A stretch of DNA of 31,433 nucleotides, taken from the NCBI GenBank assembly GCA_033442325.1, contig JAWQFM010000006.1:1874515-1905947 (forward strand), in the 5' to 3' direction. Below, one piece after another: positions 11,244-14,200 of the stretch (the stretch's first letter is position 1; each line of letters opens with the position of its first letter). Below the pieces are notes generated by a model. That model was given only the letters and a program-made list of their open reading frames with translations. It searched no databases and was not told the origin of the DNA. Made by a program: the position numbers and the translations under genes. This DNA comes from Salpingoeca rosetta. Lineage: Eukaryota; Protista; Choanoflagellata.

Positions 11244-14200
11244 CTACAGCAGTGGCAGGTGCTGCTGCGCCTTCAGCTCGTGCAACTCTGCCCGCAGCTC
11301 AGCCTGAGACGTATTAAGCGGGGGAAGGGGGAGCATTGGTGAGGTGGCGGTGGTGGCAAGCGTGCAGCGCATGCGAGAGTGTCAGCGTCGACATGGCAGC
11401 GGGTGTGGCAGAGGCAGTGGAAGAGGAGGAGGAAGAGGCTTGTGTGAATCATGGTTGCGGTGATGGTGGGTGTGGCATGGGTGCTGTTGGTGATGAGTGG
11501 TGTTTGGTGGCAACAACAGCGGCAGTCCACTTGGTGATACAACATTACACGACGTGACACCAAGACATGATGAACGTACGCATTGCTGGGCGAGGTGCTG
11601 CACAGCGCCGACGGCGTCGTAGAGGAGAGCGCTCGTGTCAACACACAAAACGTCTGAAACAGGGGCGGTGGTTGTGCTGCTGTCTTGCAGCCGCATTGTC
11701 CCGCCTGCATGAACCGCCTCAGGGTACACGTCTTGCATCTCTTGCGCGAGGACGCCCACGTGCGAACGTGGCACAGATTCTTGTGCCTGCGGCAGAGGCG
11801 TGTGGATGCAAGGGTTGATATTGAACACAAAACCACACACTGGTGAGTGCGACGAAGTATAACAGAGAGCTGTGGTTCCAACAACCAGGCACACATTATG
11901 AAATGAACACGTGCACACCAAGCAGTGATTTGGTTGGCCGCATTCACATCCATTATCATCACCACCAATACACGAAAGTATGCTACCCACTGACCTCGTT
12001 GTTGCTGTTGCCGTGGGCGGCGGCGTTTTGGTCCACAACGCCGTCTTTGTACACAAAGCGGTGGAGACGAACGTTTGAGATGCGCTGAAACGCCTCCTCC
12101 GGGGAAACGCCCCCAAGCACCGTCTTCAGACGCGCATCAGACGTCTGCAGAAGATTGCCAGTCAGCCTGTGCAAGTGCGTGAGAGGGTGTGTGTGTAAGT
12201 GTACAAAGTGTGTTAGTGTATTAGTGTGTGTGAATGCCCGTGATTGATTGAGTGAGTGAGTGAGTGAGAGTTGATGGTGTCTCAACAGACAGGACACAAG
12301 CTGCAGTGATGGCGAATAACACAAGGCATGGCAAATGCACCAAACAACACCCAGCACAACGCGAGCTACCAACCAACGCCAACACCACCATCCAAATAAC
12401 CCCCCCCCCCCTTTCCGAGCGCAATCGCACCTGATGTTTCCAAGAACGCAGAGCGCCTCGTCCGGGTTGGGAATGTTGATACCGACGGGGCCAAAGTGGC
12501 ACGCGCTGTGCCGTGTCTGGCCTTTGTACCACGGCTTGTGGTGCTGCGTCTCCTTCGGGTCTGACTCAAACTGGCGCGGGTTTGACCCGCGGACAACAAT
12601 GCGATCGGACAGCATGGACGAAATCGGCACCGGGTCGTGCTGCAGTGGTTGGTGGCGGTGGTGGTCGACACCGTGGTTGTGGTGGTGAGGGTGGTGTGGC
12701 ACGAGGGGTACAATGGTGCACCAAGCACAAGTGGTGCCTTGTGCAGCGCACCCATGCAAAGTATACTGGTGCACTCAACGCGCACACGCACACGCACACA
12801 CACACAAACGCGCACACGCACACGCACACACACACAGACACACAGACACACGCACAAACAAACAAACAAACACACAGACACACAGACACACAGACACACG
12901 CACAAACAAACAAACAAACACACAAACCAAAAGCTGCATGCATGGGGGAGCGTACATCGCAGATGGCGACGAGGTTGACGGCGAGGGCGAAGAAGCGCTG
13001 GTCCGGGTTGAGGCCGCCGTGGCGCCGCATGTTGTTCGCCGTCGGCTGGCTAAAGTGCAGCCGCCCAATCTGCAGCGCACCATAGAAACGAAGCGGGAGA
13101 TGGAGGAAAGAAGTTGTTTGTGTGTTTGCATGTGCATTCGTGTGCATATGCGTACGTGTGTGCAGATGTAAGTAAGACAAGATGGGTCAGAGTGTGCATG
13201 GGAATGTCCAGCCACAACAACAGCAGCAGCACCGCCACCGCACCACAAACACCACAAACATCACAAACATCAGGCCACTCGCTCGACCGCACTGACCGAG
13301 AGGCGCTGCGTCGTTCCCTCTGCGAGGTGCACGCGAAGTGGCCGGAAGGGGTGGCGCCGGCGGTCAGACTCAGACTGGTGCAGCTGCACCTGCATATCGG
13401 GACTCTCAACCTGGAACACCAATAACGTTTGATGGGTATTTGTGTATGTTGTGAGGCAGCAAGCGGGGCAGAGGACGTGTGAAGTGAGATAACAGCTGGT
13501 GTTTGTAAGGCGTTTAGGGAGTTGACACAACTTCAGTGTGCAAATGAGCGAGCACACACATGCACACACAAGCACACGTTTATTCATGCGCACATACGCA
13601 CACTCAACACATACGCACACTTACATACACGCACACCTTGATGCCGTTGAGGTGGATCTCGAATCTGCTGATGGCGACGGGGGTGCCGAGCTTGCTCTGG
13701 GCAAAGCAGGGAAGCGGGCCAGTGGTGATGCGCAGCGTCAGCTGGAAGTGGTTCTTCTTCTGGCAGATGAAGATGCGGGGGCTGTGGAACCGGAAGCCCT
13801 TGTCCTCACGCAGGTGCAGTGATGGCGGGGGGCTGCAGTGTGCAGGGGAAGGGAGCCAACAAATGGTGAGACGTGGCGATGGTGGTCAGGCATGATGATG
13901 GTGATGATGATGATGATGATGATGATGATGATGATGATGATGATGATGATCTGACAATGACAATGAAAACGACAACGCAGGCAGTGGGAGTGGCCACTGG
14001 ACGTGCAAACACGTCCACAAGCGCACTACGAGAGCAGCGGGCGAACCGCACACTTAAGTGTAGGAATCACGGCAAGCCGTGCACAGCGTGCGTACATTTG
14101 GTTGAGGTCGGCATCAAAGACGAGAGCACACGTCTGGTGCGGGTTTGACTGCAATCACGCCATGTCGAGGCAGTGTGAGATGAGGTGAGCTAAGGGTGGG

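Follow-up and report, generated by a model that had tools for sequence, protein, structure and literature searches.

Background

MYRF is the textbook transcription factor that is freed from the endoplasmic reticulum by a phage-derived, self-cleaving domain, the ICA domain. This domain has been described as 'invariantly followed by' a transmembrane (TM) domain, and the same study asked why MYRF is membrane-bound at all, given its apparently constitutive cleavage (Li et al. 2013, PMC3742443). Here, a stretch of 31,433 nucleotides from the choanoflagellate Salpingoeca rosetta (GenBank assembly GCA_033442325.1, contig JAWQFM010000006.1, positions 1,874,515 to 1,905,947; hereafter the window) was analysed for the gene PTSG_00654, which lies on its minus strand. 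We conclude with high confidence that PTSG_00654 is a genuine, expressed paralog of the MYRF family without a membrane anchor.

Processing of human MYRF needs S578, D579, K583, G626 and I687 as well as the zipper residue L683 (PMC3742443). The construct MYRF-1:756, cut before the TM segment, trimerises, self-processes and activates transcription as well as the full-length protein, and MYRF-319:708 trimerises and self-processes in E. coli (PMC3742443). Because both constructs still self-process, the ICA domain does not need a membrane, and because these TM-less proteins also trimerise and MYRF-1:756 is fully active, a natural form without an anchor is mechanistically plausible. Literature searches found no description of TM-less MYRF relatives, and the one paper found on choanoflagellate MYRF, a 2026 survey, placed a Monosiga ortholog among proteins selected for a TM segment and treated choanoflagellate MYRF as membrane-bound.

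Gene structure and domain content

PTSG_00654 has nine exons on the minus strand (16755/15297..11244) and is annotated as a Salpingoeca rosetta hypothetical protein. A word search with exon 1 found the database record P0001, 'hypothetical protein PTSG_00654 [Salpingoeca rosetta]' (682 aa), whose sequence is that of the nine-exon model from the internal Met at 15297 to the C-terminal end, and which is 100% identical to the last 308 codons of exon 1. Exons were searched singly with Pfam, whole-protein analyses were run on P0001, whose residue numbers are used throughout, and the two paralogs described below (C26 and C7) were analysed as single-exon open reading frames (ORFs).

On P0001, Pfam detected NDT80_PhoG (PF05224; 9.5e-28, residues 347-494) and Peptidase_S74 (PF13884; 6.9e-10). 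In the single-exon searches exons 3, 5 and 6 matched NDT80_PhoG, and both exon 7 and exon 8 matched Peptidase_S74; the last part of exon 8 also matched the first part of MYRF_ICA. The DNA-binding domain of human MYRF (5yhu) matches that of P0001 with E 4.7e-49, and the human ICA crystal structure (7dc3) matches with E 1.1e-17 over chain residues 7-166 of 179; the linker that is expected to form a triple beta-helix (human W536-P577) is likewise present in the two alignments. This linker is the best conserved part, with 44-56% identity to relatives, followed by the DNA-binding domain (37-45%) and the ICA domain (24-32%). Two basic clusters, RRTRRRR (residues 155-161) and KRARR (271-275), resemble nuclear localisation signals. 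The features of the gene are as follows.

Exon 1, 14374..16755, minus strand: Q-rich open frame from the ATG at 16755, with the annotated start at the internal Met 15297 (ORF list, match to P0001).
Exon 2, 14096..14148, minus strand: start of the DNA-binding domain (matches P0001, aligns with human 5yhu).
Exon 3, 13637..13832, minus strand: NDT80/PhoG DNA-binding domain (Pfam NDT80_PhoG on the exon alone, P0001).
Exon 4, 13297..13410, minus strand: DNA-binding domain (P0001, 5yhu alignment).
Exon 5, 12956..13069, minus strand: DNA-binding domain with the clade-specific Pro (Pfam 1.5e-07 on the exon, RNA loose ends at 12639, motif table).
Exon 6, 12431..12639, minus strand: end of the DNA-binding domain (SNPRQFE, with the clade-specific Arg) and most of the triple-beta-helix linker (junction of exons 6 and 7 confirmed by RNA).
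Exon 7, 11995..12166, minus strand: end of the linker and first half of the ICA domain (Peptidase_S74 profile positions 1-35, 7dc3 alignment, junctions confirmed by RNA).
Exon 8, 11580..11786, minus strand: second half of the ICA domain with GVLAQE, PEAV and VGAVQHL (Peptidase_S74 38-58, MYRF_ICA 1-21, junctions confirmed by RNA).
Terminal exon, coding part, 11244..11303, minus strand: zipper and stop codon TAG at 11246-11244 (junction of exons 8 and 9 in 21 RNA reads and one contig).
3' untranslated region (3'UTR), 10312..11243, minus strand: contiguous with the coding part of the terminal exon and containing the ORF 10231-11178 (RNA depth 25-64, no joints).

Exon 1 had no Pfam match and no hydrophobic segment by hydropathy. 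Its frame is open for 486 codons beyond the annotated Met 15297, up to the ATG at 16755, with very long poly-Gln runs, and the public PTSG_00654 model may be too short at its N-terminus.

Stop codon and terminal exon in RNA

RNA-seq was searched over 10360-12760, using raw reads from three stranded 2026 runs and contigs from one older run. Introns 11304-11579, 11787-11994 and 12167-12430 were confirmed, all bounded by CT..AC on the plus strand, that is GT..AG for a minus-strand gene, and reads with loose ends at 12639 continue into the end of exon 5. Coverage on the gene strand was continuous from 11303 to 10360 at a depth of 25-64 per run, the stop codon being covered at depth 25-35 in each of the three runs, and no joint, no loose end and no letter unlike the genome was found between 11303 and 10360 in the three raw-read runs and the contig run. 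One RNA contig (X5 record 1) extends from 11303 to 48 nt past 10360 (about 10312), which gives a 3'UTR of at least about 940 nt.

Because RNA coverage is unbroken across the stop codon, without joints or differing letters, TAG 11246-11244 is in use. A preliminary description, made from the DNA letters alone, had placed the end of the frame about 20 residues into the coiled coil and asked for the last exon to be confirmed by RNA-seq; the stop lies 19 codons into the zipper, and the terminal exon is read unbroken through it, with the last three introns in place. Transcripts that skip 11244 and reach a downstream TM exon, for example in 10231-11178, which the description had named as contrary to its reading, were not found.

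This bears directly on an artefact of annotation or assembly, in which the transcript would continue to a downstream TM exon or the stop would be a sequencing error. A long open frame (10231-11178) does lie downstream on the same strand, but its translation is a Cys/His/Val-rich sequence of low complexity, the stretch is contiguous 3'UTR without joints, and the frame was rejected as a TM exon. With the three runs over the stop and the contig from 11303 to about 10312 free of any joint, loose end or differing letter, and with the ortholog of Salpingoeca kvevrii ending at the same position, we regard such an artefact as very improbable and largely refuted.

The last intron (11304-11579) is retained at a low level (contig depth 4.3 versus 440). 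It was rejected as a source of a TM segment: the resulting tail is Pro/His-rich, has a stop inside the intron and contains no hydrophobic segment. RNA reads covered the 3'UTR two to four times as deeply as the coding exons (25-64 versus 5-19), which could be due to 3' bias of the libraries or to extra 3' transcripts.

Absence of a membrane anchor

Hydropathy was calculated after Kyte and Doolittle (KD) in windows of 19 residues. No TM segment was found in P0001, with a maximum of 1.36, nor in the upstream part of the exon 1 ORF, with a maximum of 1.05. The window scoring 1.36 is a conserved strand of the DNA-binding domain, which scores much alike in all relatives, and for reference the TM segments of canonical relatives reach 2.3-3.0 and the tail anchor of the C7 paralog 1.9. 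A TM helix after the ICA domain is absent, the stop that is used in RNA coming first, and an N-terminal signal anchor was rejected on hydropathy for both P0001 and the longer exon 1 ORF. The luminal domain MRF_C2 (PF13888) was not found in P0001 by Pfam, and the earlier claim that TM and luminal domains are both lacking is borne out. MRF_C2 had no match across the S. rosetta genome either, a result of little weight as the control genomes of the family were silent too.

The ICA domain

The self-cleavage motif SDARLK is encoded at 12141-12124 on the minus strand (residues 546-551), as first noticed in the preliminary description, with Ser546 at 12141-12139 and Lys551 at 12126-12124, and it aligns residue by residue with (S/A)DLRAK of the human ICA crystal construct in the 7dc3 match given above. 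In the same alignment the essential human residues S578, D579, K583, G626, L683 and I687 correspond to S546, D547, K551, G605 (in GVLAQ), L666 and L670; all are kept, the single change being Ile687 to Leu670. The invariant Arg of SDxRxK is also kept. From Ser546 to Leu682, the last residue, there are 137 residues, the length that had been estimated for the piece downstream of the cut.

The ICA domain occupies the extreme C-terminus of the protein, including the C-terminal zipper, and the crystallised human construct extends about 9 residues further than the protein. The ICA domain of the phage T5 tail fibre (pb1, 8hqz) gave a weak match (E 0.32) that reaches the last residues of both proteins.

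A homotrimer of residues 500-682 was modelled and scored ipSAE 0.90, the best of three controls scoring 0.00. Contact agreement between runs was at least 89% with pLDDT of at least 80, and the predicted contacts fall in residues 507-557 and at the heptad positions of 659-677. Of 30 proteins whose solved structure is a pair of one chain, 21 pass the ipSAE mark, and of 23 solved as single chains none does; in eukaryotes the counts were 17 of 29 versus 0 of 30, but only 1 of 7 among proteins without an older solved relative.

From the gene structure, the used stop, the missing TM segment, the homology and the clade described below, we infer that the PTSG_00654 protein would trimerise, cleave itself, be soluble and act in the nucleus. 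The ICA domain would bring three chains together and fold the linker into a triple beta-helix, after which the Ser546/Lys551 dyad would cut before Ser546. The products would be a stable N-terminal DNA-binding trimer and a soluble trimer of the 137-residue ICA domain, as in the maturation of phage tailspikes. Judged by the sequence, this course of ICA-driven trimerisation, cleavage before Ser546 and release of both soluble trimers is probable. Without a tether, cleavage would be a step of assembly or maturation rather than of membrane release, and activity would be controlled elsewhere, for example by transcription, by the long 3'UTR or by nuclear import through the basic clusters at 155-161 and 271-275.

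Relatives and the anchorless clade

Relatives were collected from choanoflagellate transcriptome proteins by word searches and cluster look-ups. The best match was P0002 of S. kvevrii (complete ORF, 576 aa), which has no TM segment and ends at the same alignment position as P0001 (..HRLPASDMTL and ..QQHLPLL, respectively). P0097 of S. infusionum (complete ORF, 675 aa) has no TM segment either, and the environmental P0003 has a weakly hydrophobic C-terminal tail (KD 1.40). P0141, from two Tara Oceans DNA contigs, carries CDRRLK and ends about 50 residues after the ICA domain without a TM segment; the gene call behind it runs on through an intron, and the C-terminus given here rests on our own reading of the splice sites. 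The search for TM-less forms in choanoflagellates, which had been proposed at the outset, thus yielded S. kvevrii, S. infusionum and, by that splice reading, the Tara Oceans sequence.

A maximum-likelihood tree was calculated from 35 rows and left unrooted, with the C26 and C7 paralogs entered by their ICA exon only. P0003, P0002, P0001 and P0097 form one clade (100/98), within which the anchorless P0002, P0001 and P0097 stand together (97/81). The Pro in HFS(E/Q)PTANN and the Arg in SNPRQF are present in each of the five members of the clade and absent from all of the 40-odd other rows showing the motifs; being confined to the clade, these substitutions argue against a long-branch artefact. 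PTSG_00654 belongs to an old choanoflagellate clade in which the anchorless build is the rule.

Outside the clade, P0164 of Choanoeca flexa likewise ends shortly after the ICA domain. A group of acanthoecid and environmental sequences (P0006, P0017, P0025, P0140, P0191 and P0200) has a conserved, weakly hydrophobic C-terminal tail (KD 1.0-1.45), roughly P-(L/V)-x-x-L-V-x-x-F-(K/R)-S-x-x-x-x-L, which by its sequence resembles an amphipathic helix rather than a TM segment. Given the clade, P0164 and this weak-tail group, clear TM anchors are far from universal in choanoflagellate MYRF relatives, and membrane tethering is not universal in the MYRF family. With a natural form that is conserved, expressed and anchorless, trimer assembly and membrane release come apart as two roles of the ICA domain.

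The decay of a duplicate on its way to a pseudogene was also considered. PTSG_00654 is the fastest-evolving sequence in the family tree, and its Pfam scores are lower than those of both paralogs; however, its nine exons are intact, correctly spliced and expressed, its DNA-binding domain still matches human MYRF at 4.7e-49, and its old clade has persisted in at least three species as well as in environmental sequences. Decay is extremely improbable and largely excluded.

Several points weigh against a soluble, self-processing MYRF in S. rosetta. The first set concerns the ICA domain, which has loop insertions of roughly 15 and 4 residues, reads VDTSA at the widely conserved VNK(D/E)R motif, and is only 24-32% identical to any relative; the branch of P0001 is very long (2.45 versus a median of 0.53). 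The model of the trimer may simply reproduce the human ICA trimer 7dc3, which is already solved, and it indicates likeness rather than binding. The second set concerns cleavage: in P0097, the closest relative on the tree, the dyad reads CDSRLE (residues 417-422), with the Lys lost. Changes of the corresponding Lys (K592) in mouse MYRF block cleavage (PMC3742440), and it was observed for mouse MYRF that Ser to Cys is tolerated and loss of the Lys is not. Anchorless P0097 probably no longer cuts itself, and since its dyad is CDSRLE and Lys changes block cleavage of mouse MYRF, selection for cleavage may be relaxed in the anchorless clade. Self-processing does not appear uniform across the anchorless class, to judge by the Lys lost in S. 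infusionum. The last two points concern the anchor: joints with fewer than three reads per run were not listed, and an isoform below roughly 10% could escape; and Kyte-Doolittle hydropathy is a crude predictor of TM segments, though the gap to real ones is wide.

The main rival follows from the second set. Here the soluble trimer would stay uncut, the ICA domain being kept only as a module for oligomerisation and folding, with cleavage dispensable once there is no membrane. The S. infusionum ortholog, which retains the domain after losing the catalytic Lys, fits this, as do the failure of the mouse K592 mutants to cleave, the long branch and the loop insertions of P0001, and VDTSA in place of VNKDR, common to P0001 and S. 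infusionum. However, S. rosetta, S. kvevrii and the environmental P0003 have lost none of the four residues Ser, Asp, Arg and Lys of SDxRxK, and G605 and the zipper positions are kept, where drift would be expected under relaxed selection over so long a branch. We hold an uncut trimer to be unlikely for S. rosetta and prefer cleavage before Ser546. The soluble self-processing class of MYRF that the preliminary description had proposed is supported wherever sequence and RNA data bear on it: the stop is used, the ICA domain is complete to its zipper and an anchorless clade exists (P0002, P0097), but self-processing does not appear to extend evenly across this clade.

Other paralogs in S. rosetta

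A six-frame search of the S. rosetta genome found three genes that combine NDT80 and S74 domains. The C26 paralog (contig C26, minus strand, about 204.0-205.3 kb; L009 5038-6288) carries, in one exon, an ICA domain with SDKRVK, a zipper, a strong TM segment (LTLCVLLASVLAVGVAVLI, KD 2.86) and the Thr-rich stretch of an ectodomain that follows it. It groups with animal MYRF at 100/99 and is likely the true MYRF ortholog. The C7 paralog (contig C7, minus strand, about 45.1-45.8 kb; L010 5119-5809) has an ICA domain with SDRRIK in one exon, and its last exon, after a GTACGG...CAG intron read by eye, ends in ...LSWAAVGAGVAAAAGLFAVAFRPR. This end is a tail anchor (WAAVGAGVAAAAGLFAVAF-RPR, KD 1.9), making C7 a minimal tail-anchored MYRF; it groups with S. 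kvevrii-b, S. helianthica, Choanoeca flexa and Monosiga.

PTSG_00654 shares with both paralogs the DNA-binding domain, the linker, the ICA build and the intact dyad; both of them are anchored, by a TM segment with a Thr-rich ectodomain and by a tail anchor, respectively, whereas PTSG_00654 is anchorless. S. rosetta therefore carries receptor-like, tail-anchored and anchorless MYRF forms together, and, the organism being described as genetically tractable, the three can be compared within a single cell. A recent truncated copy of the canonical paralog was rejected as the origin of PTSG_00654: a clade of P0001 and C26 was rejected with p-AU 0.022, in a test in which C26 was represented by its ICA domain only and the group was chosen after the tree had been seen.

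The presence of three paralogs raises the question of indirect tethering, in which the anchorless chain would enter mixed trimers with C26 or C7 and be held at the membrane until the mixed trimer cleaves. The three share the same linker and ICA domain in one genome, and ICA-driven trimerisation is generic (PMC3742443). Against this, the ICA domain of P0001 is only about 27-30% identical to those of the other choanoflagellate groups, and the homotrimer is predicted with confidence on its own. Such tethering is improbable and ranks after the uncut trimer, and a homotrimer that would be soluble remains the preferred form.

In the unrooted tree the anchorless clade lies across the 100/98 branch from all other holozoan MYRFs. 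A distinctly doubtful idea is that this clade preserves the original layout of the NDT80-ICA fusion, in which a DNA-binding domain would merely shed a terminal chaperone of phage style, and that anchoring was added afterwards, a tail anchor first and a type-II ectodomain later. If it were true, the three S. rosetta paralogs would form a living series of anchor evolution.

Surrounding sequence

The introns (12167-12430, 12780-12940, 13900-13960 and 14290-14340) are rich in (TG)n, (TTTG)n and (CAT)n microsatellites, and ORF 11983-12774 passes in frame through the intron that separates exons 6 and 7. On the opposite strand lies an ORF at 9020-10060 (+), parts of which look coding; it points towards the 3' end of the MYRF-like gene, and a (GT)n tract at 10231-10350 separates the two.

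Comparison with known systems

Compared with animal MYRF and MYRFL (DNA-binding domains 5yhu, 5h5p and 5zhu; ICA domain 7dc3), PTSG_00654 shares the NDT80-type DNA-binding domain, the linker, the Ser/Lys dyad, GV(I/L)AQ and the leucine zipper, and differs in having neither a TM helix nor the luminal MRF_C2. Dictyostelium MrfA is likewise a non-animal factor of the MYRF family with the dyad (PMC3742440), but amoebae are named among the members whose domain arrangement is membrane-bound (Li et al. 2013, PMC3742443), unlike PTSG_00654. Yeast Ndt80 and fungal PhoG and Vib1 are soluble transcription factors with a DNA-binding domain of the same fold family (PF05224); they have no ICA domain, no beta-helix linker and no trimerisation by a chaperone domain (PMC3742440).

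PTSG_00654 is the natural counterpart of the TM-less human constructs MYRF-1:756 and MYRF-319:708 (PMC3742443), which are laboratory truncations, whereas its own end is a native and conserved gene end. In the tailspikes and tail fibres of phages (K1F endosialidase; T5 pb1, 8hqz) the ICA domain is C-terminal as in PTSG_00654, so that the piece cut off is small and soluble; the cargo in PTSG_00654 is a eukaryotic DNA-binding domain rather than a fibre or enzyme, and the sequence similarity is marginal. The phage-like layout, with the chaperone at the very end, from where it would be discarded, exists in a eukaryotic transcription factor.

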